DNA of 63,513 nt, filler included, from Lenisia limosa (taxonomy: Eukaryota > Protista > Breviatea): NCBI GenBank assembly GCA_001655205.1. It is 13 parts of 13 records of this genome, joined end to end, with 100 filler letters (N's around TTAATTAATTAA, not from the genome) between each part and the next. Parts side by side here need not be neighbours in the genome. Positions count along the whole stretch, not along the records: positions 38,022 to 42,932 come from LPNZ01005920.1; 12 more parts are not named here. One strand, 5' to 3'. Position 1 is the stretch's first letter, and every line of letters begins with the position of its first letter. The translations under genes were made by a program, and so were the position numbers. This document shows positions 2,330 through 43,172 of this stretch, piece by piece. The notes under the pieces were generated by a model. It had not been told where the DNA came from, did no database searches, and saw only the letters and a program-made list of their open reading frames with translations.

Positions 2330-5300
2330 NNNNNNNNNACGAGGAACTTAGTCCTTTTTACGTCCTTCTTCAGTGTCTGAAGCTCAGTGTCGTCTGAGAG
2401 GGGTAAACGAATTCCTGGTCTCAGTAGCTATAAAGATGCAATCAAACTGACAATAATCCCTGAAATGCCCACTTTCGTCAGTCAAGACAAGTGAACTACA
2501 GGACATTCTCCTTTCTCTTGACACTGGCGGTGAGCAGCTGACCGAATCCGCACTTTCTNNNNNNNNNNNNNNNNNNNNNNNNNNNNNNNNNNNNNNNNNN
2601 NNNNNNNNNNNNNNNNNNNNNNNNNNNNNNNNNNNNNNNNNNNNNNNNNNNNNNNNNNNNNNNNNNNNAATTTTGCTGTTGACGACAGAGCTACAAGGTC
2701 AAACTATCACCACAAGTCTCCCTAAAGAGGTAGCCCTTTACACCCCCACAAGTCTCAGATGAAGCCAGCGCTTTAGTAAGTCTGCGCTCCGGCACTTCGC
2801 TTTCCGCTGTCTGTGGGGTAAAACAAAAATCCCAATTCCAAGCAAACAGAATGAATATTCGACTTGAATTTCTACCCCTAGAAACGTGATGATGGGGGGC
2901 CAGGTTCAACATTTTAGAAGCCCAGTCCAAAAAAATTCTGAGAATATGATATGATAAATTCGTAGCATAGTAATAATATATCATTTGAGAAAACATTTTG
3001 TTTGAAATGTACGTTATATTGACTTTACCTGGGGGCGGGACCTCAGGGGCGAGTGTGTCGCTGGTGGAGACCCCAGGCCGGGCTCCTGGAACCGCCTTCT
3101 GAGGGGGGGGGGGTAAAAGAAGACTATTGTGGTAAAGATACTACTCACCAACCGAAAAATCTAGGGAGGTATCGAATCAACAACAATTGATTCAAAACAA
3201 AAACAAAGAGTTGGAGTGGATGGAAGTGCAGTCAATAGGTTTGAAGTGCCCAACATTGGAATGAACAAACCTTCTTAAAGGAGGCGACAGGAGCGCGGCA
3301 GCCGGGGCCTCTGCAGCATAGCCATGCCGGGCAAAAGCTTGTGCCAGGTCTACTAAGTCAGACTAACCACTCCTTGTGTCACTCATCTAAGCTAATTTCA
3401 TTTTAATCAAGGAGCAAAAGCCAGAGTAATGCACCCCCCACCCAATCCCATGCTTACCATCAATTTCCACACCCTGTTCCTTCGGACGCCTTAGGGCCGA
3501 CTTAATTGGCTCGGCTGGCTCGGATAACAGGTTCAGTGGCGGCGGGGAGGAGGGTGGTGAGTTGGATCGAGAGAGCACGGGGGACAAGGAGTTGTTGATG
3601 AGGGGGGTGGCAGGATCAAGGAGTTCAACCACATTGGCGGGCACTTCGATGACGGGAATGGTGTCTTGAGAGGCCTGTATGGTGAGTTGGATCGGAGGCT
3701 TCTAACTTCGTAATTATCAATGGCCTTTAGACTTTTCAACAATTTATATTATGCCCAACCAAACCTGCAACTGGGCGAGAGAGTAGACAGAGCTGACAGC
3801 ACTAGGCGGGTTGGAGGGGAAGGGTGTCGGAGGAAACACGTGGCGGCGCAAGGGTGGCGTGTCTATATCCGGTGCCACCTCTTCGGATTCCTGTGGTGGC
3901 GGCGGTGTGATAGGGCCCGGGGCTAGCACCCCACTATGGCGTCGGGGGGATGGTGAGGGATTCTTGCTATACGGTAAACTGGGTAGCTTCGGCGACCTAG
4001 GCGACTTGTCACGTGACACTTTCTCGTCCTTAGCATAGCCCATTGAGGCTGTCAGGAAGGACGGCGTCGGCGAACTGAAGTTATACCGCTCGCTGGTATG
4101 GGTTGTGGGCTCGGGTTTGGTGAAGGGTGTGAGAGGTCCCCTGAATCGAGGCGACGCAGGCTTGTGTGAGTTGAGGTCTTCGGAACTTAAATTAGTTACA
4201 TGTGCAATGTCTCTCAGACTGGCGCGCGGGGCTGAAACTAGCGCCGCCACTTTGGGCTTTCTCGCGGCCAACACCCCATCTGTCACCTACACAGTCATGG
4301 GATAATTCAGCCAAACGTCTATTCAAAAGTGATCAAGGCATCCCTCCAGTACAAGTCCAGCAAAATATCAACAGTTGCTCAGAGTTAAGAAAGATTCTAT
4401 TAATATTTGAGAAGATAGAGTGAAGCCCACATCGTCATCTGAAGAATCCTCGGGAGGAAGGAAGGAGGATACAGAGTCACCAAGCGGAACAGGCAGGGAC
4501 AAGGACTAAAATTAAGAATGATATTCTGTTGGGAATGGATAAACCTAAGTTATTTGGAGAGGTTGACATTAAATACCTTAGCGTATCTTTGATTTCTTCA
4601 AAGGACACACCGCCAAACTTACAAATGAGTTACCGAGGTCGCCAGTTTTATTGCTGTTGTTACTCCCGCTCATTGATAGACTCGCAAAAGGTGGCGATGG
4701 GGATGGAGCATCCTATTTTGGGATAAATAGCCAATAGTGGGTGTTAACTGTTGTTTTCTTTTCTTCCTTCAGGTCCTTCATACCGATTGCGATTGCGGAC
4801 GGTCTTCATTTTGTGGTTTTGGCAGAAAACGGATTCCAAAGCTCTGTTGATGTTGACATTTGTTATGAAAAGCACCAGAACCCATTATACACCCTTTGGT
4901 TATGATACTACCGTATCATAAATAATACTTCATAAATTCACAGGAGTATCAAGGATATTTCCATTTCGACTTTGAAAATTAGTAATATAGTATATCATTG
5001 TAAATAGTTTCAGACTTCAATTGGATTCAGCATTTTCAAATATCCCCATTGCACTATGAGTAGCAAACCTCAATAGGCGACGGTGGCGCTTTAGGCGAGA
5101 CGACTGGAGATGAGGGAGGAGGTGACGCCGCTGAGGCGGCCAAAGTATCCTCAATGCGTGGCTCCAGGACCTGTTGAGAATGACTCGCAAGGTTTGGCAT
5201 ATAGTATACATAATTGCAATCAATAATAAAACCTGCATTTTACAAAAGTCTTTCGGACAAAAGTCACAACCAAGACCATTCTAACCATGAAATGTGGATC

Positions 5301-10184: not shown

Positions 10185-13100
10185 AATCTGAAGCGCCCGT
10201 TCAGCTTGTTATTTGGTGTTGATAGAAGTTCTGTGGGTACCAATTTTGTGACTTTTAAACAAAGGGGCTCCGACAAAAACAAAAATAAAAGGAAATGTGT
10301 ACAGGTACACAGTACCCAAGCAGTTCAAGAAGCAGTATGTACGGCACAATTAAGGCTTCATTTCAGTTCGGGAATATTATATCGATAGTTTTCGAGGATT
10401 TATCGAGCAATTCAGTCTTTTTTCGAACCGAAGTGAAGCCCTAGGTATGCATACAACTGTTGTTAACAGAGTTATTTTGGGGCTTTTTTTTTTGTTTCGT
10501 ACAATTCTCAATCTAACCCCTTAGATTGCCAAGCTTCGACAGAACCTTGAGGAGTCTCTAAACGCTGGAATCCTGCCCCTCATGGAATACATTAAGTCCT
10601 TCAAAATGGTGGGAACCGTGCCTTTTGAAAAGATTGTATTTTGATAAGATTGTATTTTGATGAAGATTGTATTTTGATAAGATTGTATTTTGATAAGATT
10701 GGATCGAAATGATGCGGTAAAGGGTAAATTGATAAGATATTAACACTGGGGATCAGGGCTTCCCTCCGGTTCCGATAATCCTAGAATATAATAGTGTTAT
10801 ATATCAGAGGGTTTATCATACATTTCTCTGAGTATCGACAAGAGACTAAAAACCTCAGATGAACCAGCCCCCCCCCCCCCCNNNNNNNNNNGGGGCAGAT
10901 CTAACAGATACAAAACCTATTGCAGCATTATAATCTTTTATAATGCGGTGCGATTTGTTACAGAGGCGCATGGACTTGGGATTCCCTTATATTATTTGGG
11001 AATCCCATACGTTTCTTCAAATTTCCATAAAATTCCATGGGATTCTACAATATGGGAATTCCATTGTTTTCACAAGAGTCCCAAGTCAATGCACTATAGT
11101 GATACTGCCAAAATGACATATTACCACAAAATGCATCAAGCTAGTCCAAATAAATCACAATCATAAACTAATAAAATACGTAACCTCTCCCATGCTCAAA
11201 ACTAGATCCTAGACTGTTCCTCCTAAAAGAATCAAACCAATTTAAAGCGGGGTATTTCCCTCCGACATCGTAACTGCCCCTGGAAGTCCCCCAGAGATAT
11301 ATTCGCGCCCTCCTCCCCCTCCAACTCCTTATGATATAGAAAAATAAGGCTGTATGTGGCCGAAGCCGTCCACNNNNNNNNNNATTTAGTTTGATGATGT
11401 GCTCAAACTGACCCCGTCACAATACAGCGCCCAACTTCGCGCTAATAACACGAGTGTTGCAGTGGGGGGGTTTGTTAGTTTCTTTATTTTAACAATCGTA
11501 TGAATTATTACCCCATCCGAACTTATTTTATAACACACATGAAAGCATTTTTTTTTTAATTCACCACCCCCTGCGAATCACTTTTCAAATTATTCAGTTC
11601 GTGATTAGTACCTCACATCGAAATTCCCTTCGTTTCACTCTCCCTCATCCCCCAGGATCTTGAGAAGGAAGTTCACCGTTTGAAAGGCCGAGCAGCCGAG
11701 ATCGAAGCTCTAGTCCCCCGTCACGCCCATATCATCGCTTTCCAGGTAGGGCTTCACTTTGGTCAGGAACTATCGATAAAATATCGAAAGTTTTCGAGAA
11801 TTTATCAAGAAATTCAGTGTTTTTTTTCGAACCGAAGCGAAACGCTTCTTCCAGATCGAGGGAAATCGGGTTGAGCTGCTGAGAATTAATTTTGAAGCAA
11901 TAGTAGATTTTTCATTTCATATAATTTCCTTTTTACACAGCGGGTGATCACGTCTTCTTTTCATAATTTAACTCTGCAGGTGAACGCCTCTTCGGTGCGC
12001 AAGTGGCTCATTGACAGATGCCTTGCCCTCGCCAACACAGCTATGGATGAGGTCGGCTGGGCTTTCTGAGTAAATTTCAGGGGGCTTGGTCGGGAATTAT
12101 TATCTTATACACTGACCGCGATAAGTCCTGACATGGAAATTGAGCTTTCTTTTTTGTCAATTATGTAACCCTGTCCGAGTCGGGATGCGGGGCTGCAGCA
12201 TCGACTGGCCTGGGCTTTTTTTGTTTTGTTTTTGTAACAGAGTTGATTTTGGGCTTGTTTGTTTCATAAATTTTCTAATTCTCCACATCATCCCCCACCC
12301 ACAGGTTCTTCGTATCGCTAGGACAAAGTGTGACACTGTGTCTGGCGCCTTCACTGCCATCTTCAGGAGGCTGCAGGTTCACAGGATATTGGTTGCTGCA
12401 GTGTGGAACTTTTTTGCTGATGATGACAGTGACTGGGATAAGTCATGATCTATTTTCCCTTGGAAATCACATAGTAAATCAGTAAGACTTATCCCGGTCA
12501 CTGTATTTTGAAAGAAATTCAAGCGACACTCTATTGTGTGGAAATTTATGTTAAAGTCCCCCCTCACCCTCGCAACAATCAACAGATTTAATTTTGGGAT
12601 TTTTTTTTTGTTATTGCACAAATATTCTAACTTCCTTCTTGTGATACTGTGGTAAGGTGACACTTAATTCTTTGTTTGTGGGTGTCATTTTCTCCCCACT
12701 TAGTACGTAATAGGAGGAATTGAGACTTTGACACCCGAGGTTGTTTGTTCAATATTTGTTGTTCTATATCTCGAATAAAAGCGATATTAACCACACTTTT
12801 GCAGCTAAATCGTGTTTTGTTTTATTCATCCCTCCTACACGATTCGGTTCGTGATATTACCTTTATGCCAGTATTCTTCATCGAAATTTCCTTCGTTTTA
12901 CCCCCTTTCCCTCTCGCTCAACCCTCGTGTGTTGCCAACAGAGTTGATTCGGACTTTTTTGTTTCATATGTTTTCCAATTTCACTCCCCCCCCCCCACTT
13001 GCAGGATCGNNNNNNNNNNNNNNNNNNNNNNNNNNNNNNNNNNNNNNNNNNNNNNNNNNNNNNNNNNNNNNNNNNNNNNNNNNNNNNNNNNNNNNNNNNN

Positions 13101-37190: not shown

Positions 37191-38339
37191 GGAAACAAAG
37201 TTCACTAAAAGCCCAAAAGGTTGTCAATTATGACGGTCCATACGATTTCCATATAGGGCACAGTAATGTCTCTGTTTTACACCACTTTGTGAAATCATTA
37301 AAATTAATGGAAAGTTAATACCTAGAAAACGACAAAATAAAAATGTTTTCCAATTCTCTTGGAGTTGGCTCAGAAAAGTGCATATTTCTTGCAATATTCC
37401 ACGGAAAAGCGGGCGAAGTTCCAAAAAGCATTGTTTTCGCAATTTAAGTGGACTCCGGCTTTAAGGTGAGGTCCTCTTTTTCTAGAATTCAACAAAGATT
37501 TTGCAGTTGTCTCTTATGTCAATAATAATTACTTTTGTACACTAAACCTCAATCACGAGCCAGGTTTTGGAACTATAATCTGCTTTAATGTGACTCAAAA
37601 AAGTGGGTTGTTAGTATGCTAGAGAAAAGCTGAAAAATTATTAAAAGAGGTTTTACATTTGCGTATGTCTACTCTGCTGGTTTACCAACCAAACCTGTTA
37701 TTGTATTTTCACTCTTAAAAAAAGAGATAATTATTAATAATATTGTCGTATATATCACGAAGTACAAACTATTTCAATTTGGCAAATATAAGCTCGTAGG
37801 ATGGACGTACTCTTGTTTTATTTCTCATCTCTATATGCTGCTCCGCAAAAACCTTGTGATGAATTAATATTTTCAAAATTTGCTTCTTTTTATTTACTTA
37901 AACCTCTTTGTTGTCCTTCTGNNNNNNNNNNNNNNNNNNNNNNNNNNNNNNNNNNNNNNNNNNNNTTAATTAATTAANNNNNNNNNNNNNNNNNNNNNNN
38001 NNNNNNNNNNNNNNNNNNNNNTTCGAAACGAGAGGGGATAATAGTGGTAAATGAAGATGGTTTTAAAGGGCCAGCCACAGTCCCTCACTAACAAAAATAT
38101 CAGAGCAACACAGGGTGAAGTATGATAGTTTTCGTTTCTGCTAACCCTACGTATGTTTCTTCTTGTAACCTAAGATTGGTTTCGAGGACTAATTACTAGC
38201 CATAGCATGATGCTGTCTATAATATCATATTCTTACTTCAAGCAAAGTTTGATAAAAGAGAAGTCTTGGGAACTATACCTTGGTCTAGTCTTTATTTTGC
38301 CCAATTTTTATTGATTTTCTTGAGGTTGATTTCAACAGG

Positions 38340-38785
38340 GTGTTCACTACATGCACCTTTGAAGGACAGTCTGTTGGAGTTTGTTGGGTGTCCAACATGC
38401 AAGCACGACCCTAATGGATTGGGTTGGATTGTTGCCATGTAGGAAACGTCGGCAAAGCCGGGGCCCGCCTTTCACCCCAGTGGAACACGCACGGTATGAG
38501 GGTGTTTCATATTTGAGACCTTCTGATCAGAGTTTAAGGGTGAACCTAGAAGACCGTACGTTCATGCCTGACGTCAAGCTGAGACGAGCCTTGAAGTCTG
38601 TGATCAAGGAGGAAGGCTACGATGACACCTCTTTGAAGAAACTACTGGATTTAACCCAAAAAGGCAATACCCCGATCAATCGTCCCAGCGATATCCCATT
38701 GCCCAGAGATGGTTCCGCATTCTGCGTGCAAATGCGAACCTGTAGTGTCGTTTACCCCTTCACACTATGCTGCTTCTTCATATGA
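38340..38785 (+). CDS. Hypothetical protein, C-terminal exons
   Basis: Open coding-like exon ...DVKLRRALKSVIKEEGYDDTSLKKLL... with upstream GT-AG-bounded pieces; no family recognised. Confidence 0.3.
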
Positions 38786-38829
38786 AAAATTCAGACAAAA
38801 AAGAAACAAAAAAAAAAGACAAAAAGAAT

Positions 38830-38902
38830 TGCCCACTGTCGGGCTCGAACCGACGGCCGCCAGTTTATTAGACTGGCGCTCTACCGACTGAGCTAAACGG
38901 GC
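38830..38902 (-). tRNA. tRNA-Ile (anticodon AAT), intronless
   Basis: Reverse complement GCCCGTT TA GCTC AGTCGGTA GAGC G CCAGT CT-AAT-AA ACTGG CGGCC GTCGG TTCGAGC CCGAC AGTGGGC A folds as a cloverleaf, followed by oligo-T Pol III terminator runs. Confidence 0.95.
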
Positions 38903-39135
38903 AGACAGAAAAGAGTCAGCCAATTTCAAAGCCATGATTGAACAGATTTTCGAAAAATAAATCCATTTTTAATGGGCACAAACGAAAACCCAAATATGGT
39001 AACTTCAGTACAGTTCCAGTTTATTCCTTATCGAAGTTTCTTTATACACATAAAAACTTTCATACTGCAAAAAATTAGGTTAATTTGGATAACTCAGGCG
39101 AGTTATACGCAAAAAGTTACAAACTAGCAAAATAA

Positions 39136-41540
39136 TTAGTAATAAGGTTGTTGAGTGTGAAAAGTGCAGAAACTAAAGAGTAGTTGTGTGTGTAAGGTGT
39201 AAAACGTCAGAGTCACAAGCAACACTATTATAGTATTATTATGATATAGTGGGAGACAAATCGCGATACCCCCCAGGGACCAACCAAATTTGACGCTGAT
39301 GGGGGGCGTAGAGGGCGTCCAATGACATTCACCGCCACCAGCCCGGCCTGCGGGTGAAATTGGACAATTTATCAAACCAAAATCAGCTCTGTTGACTGAC
39401 AACACACAAGGGTTGAAAACAACAAATCAAACAAATCCCAAGCCAGTCGCTTCAAAAGCACAGCACCGCATCTCATCACTCCAGCGAGGAAGGAAATATC
39501 GGCTCAGGGTATATATATATGTACATTACGAACAGAATAATCTAAAACTCGAAATAAAAAATAACAAAACAAAAACAAGCCACCAATAGACAAACCCAGT
39601 AATTGAGATGAGAAATAAAACTAGACTGTATGTATCTATCTGCGAAGCCGTCCACACCATCACACTTAAAATACGACTATTATTAATTCACCCAATGCAC
39701 ACCTTTGTGCGTGCCTCCCCGGCAAACCTGGTTATAGAGATTGTAACTATTGATGTGGCAGTCCACCAACGAGAGCTTCACAAATCGACCTAATGGTGTG
39801 ACCATATTTAAACTTGAATCTAGGGATGGTAACTTCAATAATGACCCCCTCTCCTTCCCCTAAAATGTATTCTTTTTGTTTCATAACAGCTCCATATATC
39901 CCCCCCCCCCCCNNNNNNNNNNNNNNNNNNNNNNNNNNNNNNNNNNNNNNNNNNNNNNNNNNNNNNNNNNNNNNNNNNNNNNNNNNNNNNNNNNNNNNNN
40001 NNNNNNNNNNNNNNNNNNNNNNNNNNNNNNNNNNNNNNNNNNNNNNNNNNNNNNNNNNNNNNNNNNNNNNNNNNNNNNNNNNNNNNNNNNNNNNNNNNNN
40101 NNNNNNNNNNNNNNNNNNNNNNNNNNNNNNNNNNNNNNNNNNNNNNNNNNNNNNNNNNNNNNNNNNNNNNNNNNNNNNNNNNNNNNNNNNNNTCAAGGAT
40201 TTATCAATGATTTATCGAGGATTTATTAGGTTTCATTTCGCCTTCTGCCCCCTCCCCCTACCCGATAGGTATCAGTTCAGCTGTGTCAATGGAGTCGCCT
40301 TCACCACCACCAATAAAAATGGCCACTTTCCTCGGGATGCAAGACTCATGCGCCATAATCTGGAAATAGTGACTTTATGAGATCGTTACTTCGGTTCGAA
40401 AAATGAATAAATATCTTGACAAATCCCAGTCGCCAATTATCTACCCCCCCCCCTACTTGGATTCTTTGGATTCTTGACACTCCTCCCGATAATTCCATAA
40501 AAACATTCTGGGGGTAGTCTCCAAGTCTGGGTGGAAGAGTAAAATTGGAAAATTAATGAAACAAAAAAAAAAAGCCAAAATCAACTCTGTTGGTTGACAA
40601 CACACGAGAGTTGATAATAAAAAAACAAAGCCCAGGCCAGTNNNNNNNNNNNNNNNNNNNNNNNNNNNNNNNNNNNNNNNNNNNNNNNNNNNNNNNNNNN
40701 NNNNNNNNTTGACTAGCCTGAGCAATAAAACAAGGTTGCATCTGGCAGAAGCCGTACACCATGACGCTTATAAGAGATATTGGATAATAGTATCTGGTCG
40801 AAGCCGAACACCATCACGCTTATCAGAGATTGGATAATAGTATAATACGTAGAAATGAAAAAAAAAGAAATTCATATCTGTTTTACTTGTAGCCCTGGAT
40901 TACACTGTAATACCTAAACTGAAGAATGCCATAGCAGTCGATTTTTATTGTATTTTTTGTGCACAAAGACTAAAATAGACTTCCAAAACACTCCTAAAAG
41001 TAAAATTCAATGATTTTTCTTGCTCTAAAAAGAATACTATGTAGGTTTGGGGGAGGGGGTTAATGCATGTGGAGTGCTTTAAAGTCCCAATACGTACCTA
41101 GGAGTAAGCCAGCCCTTTGACGAAGGAGTGGGCTTTAGCAGCTCCGAGACCGGGTAGGACGGGTCCTGTCCGGAGACTTGTCGGACCTTTAATGATAAGA
41201 TGTACGTGAACGATGATGTTATTGGGCATATTATATGGGTGAACGATTACACGCGATAAATTATGATGTTGTCAGGTCTTATACGGGTAATAGGGTAAAC
41301 GACGATGTAATTGAACATATTATATGTTTATGTTATGTATTTATGTGTTTCCCAAGATTGTAAAGTGATATATATACCATATAATTTGTTTTCGAAAAAG
41401 AGCCCACCTTGAAGTCCAGTCTCTGCATGATTGCTTCACCTCCCTCAGGTCCGTCCGAGTTTTACTCCTTTTGTACTCCCGACAGTGGTTAACAACTAGA
41501 GTGCCTCTGGTTGGTTCAGCGGGGCTGTGCTATGTCTACA
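39136..41540 (-). CDS. CEP104: CEP104 N-terminal (jelly-roll) domain protein; further 5' exons probably extend to ~42750
   Basis: DWTSR/LGDYPQNVFMELSGGVSRIQRIQ/IMAHESCIPRKVAIFIG...IPIG/...GRFVKLSLVDCHINSYNLYNQ/AGLVAVNVIG. This parallels CEP104 GWRSPRFCQFPQEI...LQLLAHQYMISSKIE...GQFLKL..H.N..N.YNQVALVAINIIG. Confidence 0.7.
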
Positions 41541-43172
41541 CCAGATAAGTTGTGCGGGTGAAATTTATAAAATAGAAGTGAGAAATTAAACAAGGTTTTA
41601 TCTGGTCGAAGCCCCACNNNNNNNNNNNNNNNNNNNNNNNNNNNNNNNNNNNNNNNNNNNNNNNNNNNNNNNNNNNNNNNNNNNNNNNNNNNNNNNNNNN
41701 NNNNNNNNNNNNNNNNNNNNNNNNNNNNNNNNNNNNNNNNNNNNNNNNNNNNNNNNNNNNNNNNNNNNNNNNNNNNNNNNNNNNNNACATTTGCGAGTAT
41801 GAAAGGGGGGTGAGTTCTCAAGGGGAAGAGCACCTATAGTGGCCTTGGTAAGTCTCGATTGTTCTTAAGGGAAATCAGATTATATCGTTCAAGGCTTACC
41901 ATGGTCACTGGATATGAAATCCAATTCACATCGGACAGAGCTTAGTAATGTATATGAAGGTTGGAGGCAATTAAAAGAAAGGGAACGATGATATTCGGCA
42001 AAAGAAGGAACTTATAACAAGGAATGAAAGCGGTCGTTGTCAAAAACTATGTTCATCAAGTCCATCAATAGCAGATTTTGCTCCCATAGACAACGCGGCT
42101 GTGAAAGAAGAAGCCCACAAACCAAAACAAATGACAGGATCGCGAGCTACATTGTCACCTCCTTCACGTTGTTGCCTGTTGTGAAGTCTAATTTAACTGT
42201 AAAGCCGTTAGAAGACCAAGAGGAGAGTTGTGCAGGGCTTAGAGGGCCGGGGTAAGCAAAGGAAATTCGGAATGCCTCAATGTGGCGTTATTTTTGAACA
42301 ACTCCCAGTTTTAGCGGAACAAGAGAACAACAATATACAGAGTTTCACAAAAACTTGACAAAAACGATCTCACAATAATATATTTAAATTTCTCTAAAAC
42401 TTAGGGGTTCGAAAGACCAAACTGAGACCAAACTAAAATATTTTTCTATTTTTTCCGTGGCAACATGGTGAGTGAGGCTGGAAACAACCTTGGTTCTTGT
42501 GGTTCACAGTCCCTCAGTTACGTCTTTATTACACTCTCACCAGGATCATAAGACAGGATTGATTTTTAGAACACACAAGGTGAGGGCTATCTCCATCTAG
42601 CATTGGAACTTACCCGCTTTAATGTCTTCATCCCGGAATAAATCCAGTTTAAAACACAAGATCGTACAATTACATAACAATAAAACAACTACTGTGCAAG
42701 GTGGACCAATTGGGCAAGAGGAGACGTGAGCAGTTCGGGTGTGAAGGACTAAAGCCATATGAGGTAAATAAGAGTAAAGGGGGCGGGGGGGAAGGAGGAC
42801 AAATAACGTTTTGAAGGGAAGAGAATAATAAATCAATCCAAGACGGGGGTGTAAAATTGGAAAATTTATGAAACAAAAAAAAACCCAAAGTCAACTCTGC
42901 TGGCTGACAACACACAAGGGTTGATAACAACANNNNNNNNNNNNNNNNNNNNNNNNNNNNNNNNNNNNNNNNNNNNTTAATTAATTAANNNNNNNNNNNN
43001 NNNNNNNNNNNNNNNNNNNNNNNNNNNNNNNNTTCGTTAGCATTGTGCGTTGTTTGGAGTTACATTCAATTTAAAACTCTTGATTATATCTTTTACCAAT
43101 ATTCATTTTCTACTTTTGATTAAATCTTTTACCAATACTCTTGATATCCTGGATTGTTGTTCACCCCTCCAG

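Follow-up and report, generated by a model that had tools for sequence, protein, structure and literature searches.

Probable introner-like origin of intron I5

We analysed a 380-nucleotide (nt) intron, I5, in a CEP104-like gene of the breviate protist Lenisia limosa, and the results suggested that I5 was probably created by insertion of a modular, non-autonomous repeat family carrying its own splicing signals, that is, by an introner-like element. The intron lies on the minus strand of a window of 63,513 nt (the whole stretch analysed, filler included; assembly GCA_001655205.1), in the part taken from record LPNZ01005920.1 (positions 38,022 to 42,932, hereafter the piece), and comprises three repeat modules, namely B at the donor end, a spacer, and A at the acceptor end (Table 1). 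We infer that insertion made I5, rather than that elements colonised an older intron.

The composition and the ends of I5 carry this reading. I5 is 100% family sequence, with no nucleotide outside the B, spacer and A modules. On the minus strand it runs from GTTTGCCGGGGAGGCACGCAC at 39727 through GTGATGGTGTGGACGGCTTCG, an AT-rich stretch and CGCTGGAGTGATGAGATGCGG to AATTTCACCCGCAG at 39348, and interrupts the reading of the CEP104-like protein between ...NSYNLYNQ and AGLVAVNVIG.... The sequence agrees with an earlier sequence-only reading, which had described a 380-nt intron with B at its donor end and A at its acceptor end in a CEP104-like gene; Pfam CEP104_N matches are present in the flanking exons. 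A mini B-A element, GTATGCTGGGGAGGCACACAGAAAG (GTATGCTGGGGAGGCAC...), B core, ...TTTCACCCGCAC, stands about 120 nt upstream of the CEP104 ATG and 1.8 kilobases (kb) upstream of I5. I5 begins GTTTGCCGGGGAGGCACGCACAAAG and ends TTTCACCCGCAG, and its likeness to the mini copy starts and stops at those very bases, with unrelated flanks on both. As the mini copy is non-intronic, the ends of the element are defined independently of splicing. Four further copies begin GTATGCTGGGGAGG....

Removal of the insert would also have to be exact, because seven exons (21, 89, 70, 98, 77, 92 and 63 nt, with a gap-free contig, L008, used across assembly gaps) form a single predicted open frame of 170 amino acids (aa). 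Excision of I5 would join the CEP104_N exons within this frame, consistent with the precise removal that had been supposed for it. The segments matching CEP104_N (120 profile positions) are consecutive, beginning with positions 29-50 in exon E4 and going on through exons E4b and E5; exon E6 has ten residues left to cover positions 111-120.

The same termini recur at splice sites elsewhere. In a wider sample of ten gap-free contigs of the same organism (119 kb), densities in which are biased because the contigs were picked via A-containing open reading frames (ORFs), A-type 3' termini (TTTTAC, C run, AG) are the acceptors of at least 10 introns in unrelated genes (CEP104-like, kinesin, GYF, cyclase and cNMP-domain genes), which share one sequence family in this way. 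A family terminus was found at one or both ends in most of the 13 introns whose junctions were checked, in four genes. An intron built wholly of family sequence, with both ends at element termini and the same termini at the splice sites of other genes, is the signature of a putative intron-generating element, which sustains the candidacy that I5 had been given.

As for mechanism, the 5' terminus (consensus GTAYGCTGGRG, common to A and B; GTTTGCCGGGG in I5) would supply the donor, and the 3' terminus would supply a branch-site-like TTTTAC or TTTCAC, a C-rich pyrimidine run and the acceptor CAG. The ordinary (U2-type) spliceosome would then remove the whole insert, leaving the CEP104-like frame intact. 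A U12-type reading was rejected, since I5 begins GTTTGCC, not RTATCYT, and its sole TTTGA lies about 30 nt before the acceptor.

Abundance and structure of the repeat family

Contigs of the genome run were placed on the piece at 80% likeness (9,987 contig records) and their word depth was summed. Single-copy flanks showed depths of 20-33, compared with 20,963 (39334-39497), 99,874 (40482-40645) and as much as 135,956 (42778-42932) for the A cores, demonstrating a high copy number. The B copies of intron I2 reached 22,280 (40646-40809), the bin of the I5 spacer 1,125 against about 25, and the bin with the initial 66 nt of I5 285. Overall, A is about five times as abundant as B and about 100 times as abundant as the spacer. 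Young copies exist, because 3,176 of the placed records are at least 95% alike.

The A unit is about 160 nt long and extends from GT to AG, GTACGCTGGAG...CCCCAG (for example L006 8942-9100); half of eight intact copies start GTA(C/G)GCTGGAG. Loose ends place its 3' boundary just past ...CCAATTTTAC; beyond it come a C run, which varies in length, and unrelated sequence. The B 5' terminus, GT(A/T)TGCTGGGGAGG..., was seen in six copies, of which two are intron donors (I5 and kinesin intron k4-5) and four are not, and B-only units of about 175 nt were found. Isolated A and B copies had been proposed to be eroded or interrupted relics of a longer unit; instead, A and B are discrete units with their own 5' ends, far above the spacer in abundance.

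Tandem duplications of the B core are frequent and share one junction, ...GGCTTCGGCCAG|ATACTATAATCCAATATCTC... (L007 316-412; 40713-40850; L005 11627-11719), which points to a duplication-prone unit of about 50 nt. In several family introns an unrelated palindromic element resembling a miniature inverted-repeat transposable element (MITE), CAGTGACCGGGATAAGTCTTG...CAAGACTTGTCC...CACTG, is nested (L005 9190-9275 and 10240-10320; L009 4100-4150). An Rfam scan of the piece at E<=1 for a Pol III head of the kind found in short interspersed nuclear elements (SINEs) returned only a genuine tRNA-Ile and nothing in the repeats; a tRNA- or SINE-like origin was rejected, as it has no Rfam support and the tail is a C run, not A-rich. 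Scanning Joint Genome Institute (JGI) metagenomes with a 21-nt A-core pattern gave four chance matches in GC-rich bacterial contigs, none of them related.

Family copies in other genes

In the kinesin gene (L009), the exon junctions are exact and the Pfam Kinesin segments 128-182, 185-233, 235-262 and 264-292 fall in successive exons, so that predicted removal of the intervening introns (Table 1) would keep the profile continuous. Intron k3-4 opens with GTGAGCTCCTC13 (L009 3873-3900). In the GYF-domain gene (L007; GYF E 1.1e-10), three successive introns, i1 to i3, end in A, a C run and AG, and the donor of i2 is a diverged B-like start, GTGGGGGAGGGACG..GGCACGCAGAAAG. In the cyclase gene, an exon comes directly after A. 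Assignment of L005 to an animal-type Popeye-domain gene was dropped, as Pfam gave only a weak generic cNMP_binding match.

A copies also follow the orientation of their hosts. Twenty-five of 26 lie in the same orientation as their locus (15:1 after discounting the copy that oriented each locus), and in four genes with verified strand the copies are in sense. Translations of A appear as called ORFs, three at first and then 403 by profile, all from the same European Nucleotide Archive (ENA) assembly. Among the 120 A-derived ORFs listed, 64 showed the pattern of head plus P run, and 54 of these 64 had a tail of at least 20 aa past the C run (median 43 aa); Q, from CAG, was the commonest residue after the P run, and several ORFs continue directly into kinesin, cyclase or IQ domains.

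Introns of the CEP104-like gene and its surroundings

A family terminus stands at a splice site in five of the six introns of the CEP104-like gene. The very short exons (21-98 nt) and six introns per 170 codons fit massive intron gain. A second intron in which B precedes A in the same orientation had been placed at 40527-40860; the order and orientation of the modules hold, and the span proves to be that of I2 (Table 1). A C15 run lies inside I2 (gap 40642-40708; L008rc 2999-3015). Because C runs also occur there and at the 5' end of k3-4, the homopolymers do not always follow the scheme of G runs at donors and C runs at acceptors. A region of L005 (9166-9711) considered as a third B...A intron was rejected, as its flanking exons are not joined in frame.

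The 3' terminus of A is also found in inverted form at donors. It opens I3, I4a, I4b and two L005 introns (at 10709 and 12512) and sits at a donor of the converging gene (gene X), all with p <= 0.01; in the I4a and I4b introns of 39820..40261 the shuffle p values are 0.002 and 0.000. In other family members the A terminus thus behaves as an inverted end. In I4a it is carried at both ends (inverted match p 0.07), and I5 shares just the 7-nt GGGGAGG with the reverse complement of the A consensus terminus.

Several of these introns could be read only in L008 (ENA assembly ERZ3820729 NODE_3055; 5,928 nt, gap-free, same organism), which was found via two window ORFs on record. L008 agrees with the window at every flank checked around the runs of N (N gaps) and at both ends of the piece, and fills three N gaps, whose 280, 67 and 169 N stand for a true 221, 110 and 162 nt. 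All three adjoin G or C homopolymer runs, the lengths of which vary between the window and L008; I3, for example, measures 97 nt in one of the two sequences but 98 nt in the second. G/C runs at intron ends break assembly here, and one N gap had concealed a whole exon (E4b) that divides an apparent intron in two. At the junction of E4b and E5, beside the 98-nt intron I4b, about 8-9 residues (DSSLNMVTP) are extra relative to CEP104_N, both exons reaching profile position 88 (39728-39819 / L008rc 3702-3830); these codons might have been added when I4b arose.

Splicing in polyA RNA is proven for the last intron of the upstream gene, where an RNA contig (X2 record 13; 23x depth, 0 mismatches) joins 42750 to sequence 488 nt upstream. 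There, A stops about 95 nt before the acceptor at 42749, so not every A copy provides a splice site. The last 9 exon nt and first 27 nt of this intron are tandemly duplicated (GTTGTCAAG GTGGGTGGCAGTGATGGYGGGGAGGCT, twice; L008rc 396-470), giving two candidate donors, of which the RNA uses the first.

Table 1. Modules, introns, exons and neighbouring features of I5 and its relatives (positions in the window unless a contig is named)
Feature	Position	Strand	Description
Intron I5, CEP104-like gene	39348..39727	minus	380 nt, GT..AG, phase 0
Module B in I5	39602..39727	minus	5' terminus GTTTGCCGGGGAGGCACGCACAAAGGTGTG plus core (...TAAGTGTGATGGTGTGGACGGCTTCG...TTTTATTTCTCATCTCA); five other copies, which begin GTATGCTGGGGAGGCACGCAGAAAG, share this terminus; 8 copies align with the core
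Spacer module in I5	39490..39601	minus	T-rich run, then ...GAGTTTTAGATTATTCTGTTCGTAATG...GATATTTCCTTCCT; conserved in L008rc 561-660, L009 4373-4421, L014 11108-11164
Module A in I5	39348..39489	minus	CGCTGGAGTGATGAGATGCGG...GTTGTCAGTCAACAGAG...CCAATTTCACCCGCAG; last 3 nt are acceptor CAG; nhmmer A model E 3e-36; 3' end as in mini copy, ...TTTCACCCGCAC
Exon E5	39728..39819	minus	xSSLNMVTPLGRFVKLSLVDCHINSYNLYNQ; CEP104_N 88-110, E 3.8e-4, stops exactly at donor; frame continuity
Exon E6	39285..39347	minus	AGLVAVNVIGRPLRPPSASNL; in frame with E5; donor uncertain
Exon E4b	N gap 39913-40192; L008 2228-2304		77 nt, HVSLDSNDRTNYRARQLKTVNIDAT; CEP104_N 65-88, E 5.4e-5
Intron I2	40527..41097	minus	614 nt with gap filled; tandemly duplicated B core 40713-40850, C15 run in N gap, A 40530-40641 ending ...CCAATTTTACTCTTCCACC, then acceptor CAG
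Intron I3	40360..40456	minus	97-98 nt; begins GTA, G10, TAGATAATTGG, the inverted A 3' terminus at donor; shuffle p 0.01; bin depth 896
Apparent single intron: I4a, E4b, I4b	39820..40261	minus	Read in gap-free L008; exon E4b in N gap 39913-40192
Intron I4a			208 nt; begins GTAGGGGGAGGGGGCAG (inverted A terminus), ends ...TTTTCCCATTTTACTCCCCTTCCCCCGCAG (A-type terminus)
Intron I4b			98 nt; begins GTGGC, G13, ATATATGGAGCTGTTATGAAAC (inverted A terminus)
Upstream same-strand gene, 3' part of 488-nt last intron	42749..42932	minus	Full A (42844-42932 and beyond piece) preceded by spacer and degenerate duplicated B; L008rc 405-892
Non-intronic copies upstream of ATG	41555..41790	minus	Partly in N gap 41618-41786; A 3' end (...CCAATTTTAT, C14), 17 nt on a 159-nt mini B-A element
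tRNA-Ile(AAT) gene	38829-38903	minus	ARAGORN; Rfam 67.6 bits; some 380 nt downstream of E6; flanked by two converging genes
Converging ORF	38381-38785	plus	134 aa, ...FMPDVKLRRALKSVIKEEGYDD..., without Pfam match
Kinesin intron k1-2	L009		Full A at end, then C10TCCCCCAG
Kinesin intron k2-3	L009		Begins GTAAGAGGGAAG14, then inverted A-like end
Kinesin intron k3-4	L009		Ends ...TTTTCCTATGTTTACACCCCCCAG
Kinesin intron k4-5	L009		425 nt; begins GTATGCTGGGAAGG (B 5' terminus donor), ends ...TTCGTTTTACTCCCCACTCACCACCTAG

Alternative origins of I5

Several observations weigh against creation of I5 by insertion. The A copy of I5 is diverged, with 71-88% identity to other copies (blastn) and a bin depth below that of near-consensus copies, so the event was not recent. 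In the 119 kb, the B-to-spacer junction is unique to I5, and in this small sample we found no other intron that aligns with I5 along its full 380 nt. Certain A copies sit within introns at a distance from any splice site (42844; L005 11071), and others are not intronic at all. The first 60 nt of I5 compared with the reverse complement of its last 60 nt gave a score of 7 (shuffle p 0.51), that is, no significant terminal inverted repeat (TIR), and no shared flank indicative of a target-site duplication (TSD) was seen in the mini, A-only or B-only copies. The host gene itself may encode the N-terminal domain only, or may be a truncated copy of uncertain function, because the tRNA gene and the converging gene follow so closely behind E6 (within 400-900 nt; 39228-39347, 38381-38785). 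The sole RNA run of the study has no coverage of the CEP104-like gene, so no read passes over I5, and an older intron at this site is conceivable. The unspliced E6 frame stops at about 39228, and no further CEP104 exon was evident between E6 and the tRNA or the converging plus-strand ORF. Searches for CEP104 orthologues used short exon queries (30-58 aa): phmmer with a 37-aa exon, a query too short, against 1.8 billion representatives gave only repeat-protein noise, a word-index search with a 58-aa exon ORF and a PDB search gave no candidate, and a short-exon search of the ESM Atlas gave nothing meaningful.

These points bear in part on the possibility that an older, ordinary intron was filled by successive insertions of intron-dwelling repeats, as with Alu or MITEs, while its original sequence was turned over. 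The copies placed off splice sites and outside introns are what such a history predicts, as are mosaic introns with nested, unrelated palindromic MITEs, very unequal module abundances and a B-to-spacer junction confined to I5. Against it, I5 consists wholly of family sequence and both of its ends are element termini base for base, and in most of the 13 checked introns of four genes one or both ends are likewise termini. Because this coincidence of ends is so exact and recurrent, random colonisation of pre-existing introns is unlikely, and we regard a filled older intron as improbable, yet as an explanation to be taken seriously.

The sequence-only reading had put forward B-spacer-A as a hypothetical mobile unit, with a weak terminal inverted match that could be a TIR supplying the AG. 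In its fullest form, this would make B-spacer-A a single MITE with G-rich TIRs that moved by DNA transposition, its 3' TIR giving the AG and lone A and B copies being decay products. The consensus termini CTGGGGAGG (B 5') and CCTCCCCAG (A 3', near-consensus copies) are indeed reverse complements, and the inverted A terminus that starts several other introns, and that I4a has at both ends, is TIR-like in some members. The ends of I5, however, lack a significant inverted match, and the TSDs for which a check had been proposed are visible neither in I5 nor in the mini, A-only or B-only copies; the flanks of I5 and of the L006 copy show CAG/CAG only, which is indistinguishable from the splice consensus. 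Moreover, units of A alone and of B alone end sharply at recurrent positions and are many times as numerous as the spacer, and no second full B-spacer-A copy was found in the 119 kb, where only the spacer-to-A junction recurs, once (L008rc 561-790; 73% over 239 nt). A single transposon of this kind is accordingly quite unlikely. Whether B-spacer-A was built up stepwise or arrived as a single unit, the two routes are equally possible for the introner-like origin that we prefer.

How the family spread is a separate matter, which overlaps with creation of I5 by insertion. Because neither TSD nor significant TIR was seen, both a DNA-level route that leaves no marks and an RNA-level route are possible. 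In the latter, excised introns would reverse-splice into transcripts and be copied back to DNA. The exact GT..AG extent of the element, the strong sense bias in verified genes and the lack of TSD and TIR in I5 are in keeping with such spread, but copies upstream of the ATG carry CAC in place of CAG, and copies lie antisense to the converging gene, where their inverted terminus forms donors. Nor is the predicted fold unusually stable, unlike that of fungal elements: compared with dinucleotide shuffles, z was +1.40 for I5 and +0.88 for most of GYF i2 (L007 279-822). The hairpin at GTGATGG... to which attention had been drawn is weak, and an explanation by RNA structure was rejected, as neither I5 nor the GYF intron is more stably folded than its shuffled versions. 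Taken together, RNA-level spread is rather doubtful. We also consider, tentatively and as an idea that is possible rather than probable, that the terminal module (…GTTTCATAAATTTTCCAATTTTACT, C run) is a two-way splice-site cassette: in sense it would give branch site, pyrimidine tract and acceptor, and inverted, with a G run after GT, it would give donors, so that in either orientation the family might have seeded a large share of the dense introns between short exons, with mosaics like I5 arising from its parts.

Relation to known intron-generating systems

The most economical reading is that the family is a modular, introner-like one. Introners, a phenomenon of the same general sort, have been described from 175 genomes, and about 40% of their families have neither TSD nor TIR (Gozashti et al., 2022, PMC9860276; Gozashti et al., 2025, PMC12130899). 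On this ground, the family is of a kind already known in other eukaryotes and not a new kind. Like the introners of Micromonas, Aureococcus, dinoflagellates and others, it is non-autonomous and present in many copies, which make up entire spliceosomal introns in genes unrelated to one another; splice signals are part of the element itself, and insertions in conserved coding sequence would leave the mRNA unchanged. In contrast to introners, the family consists of several modules (A, B, spacer and variant 3' ones) and its introns are mosaics rather than near-identical end-to-end copies. Its termini are homopolymer-like G or C runs, and the A terminus seems to serve acceptors when it lies in sense and donors when it is inverted. 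Lineage-specific gain is a trait of introners, and the present family is known from the sequence of one genome.

Other systems share some of these features. Fungal introner-like elements (van der Burgt et al.; PMC3609843, PMC4457414) likewise lack TSD and TIR, show sense bias and decay towards ordinary-looking introns, and spread by reverse splicing was proposed for them; a stable predicted structure has been reported there, which I5 and the GYF intron do not share, and their copy numbers are in the hundreds against thousands here. In the Physarum type of U12 intron derived from transposable elements (TEs), mass intron creation was ascribed to a TE with splice motifs, and intronic mononucleotide or pyrimidine-rich tracts break assemblies, much as N gaps abut G or C runs here. 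Unlike that type, I5 has GTTTGC in place of RTATCYT and no TTTGA 9-12 nt before the acceptor, which makes it U2-type, and the proposed TA target duplication was not seen; the resemblance is only a lead. The MITE-derived non-canonical introns of Fritillaria borealis (Henriet et al., 2019, cited in PMC11282704) stem from short non-autonomous elements with inverted ends at intron boundaries, for which I4a, I3 and I4b offer a comparison; the introns of the present family are instead of the canonical GT-AG type, and no significant TIR bounds I5.

The origin of new spliceosomal introns is a long-standing question, and introners are its best-documented source. The unusual traits of the family in L. 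limosa are its modular make-up, its G/C-run termini and what seems to be a double role of one terminus, which is found at acceptors in the sense orientation and at donors in the inverted one. If the gain of I5 holds against orthologues, the family would add a system in which to follow the way an element comes to carry both splice sites and the way mosaic introns come about.

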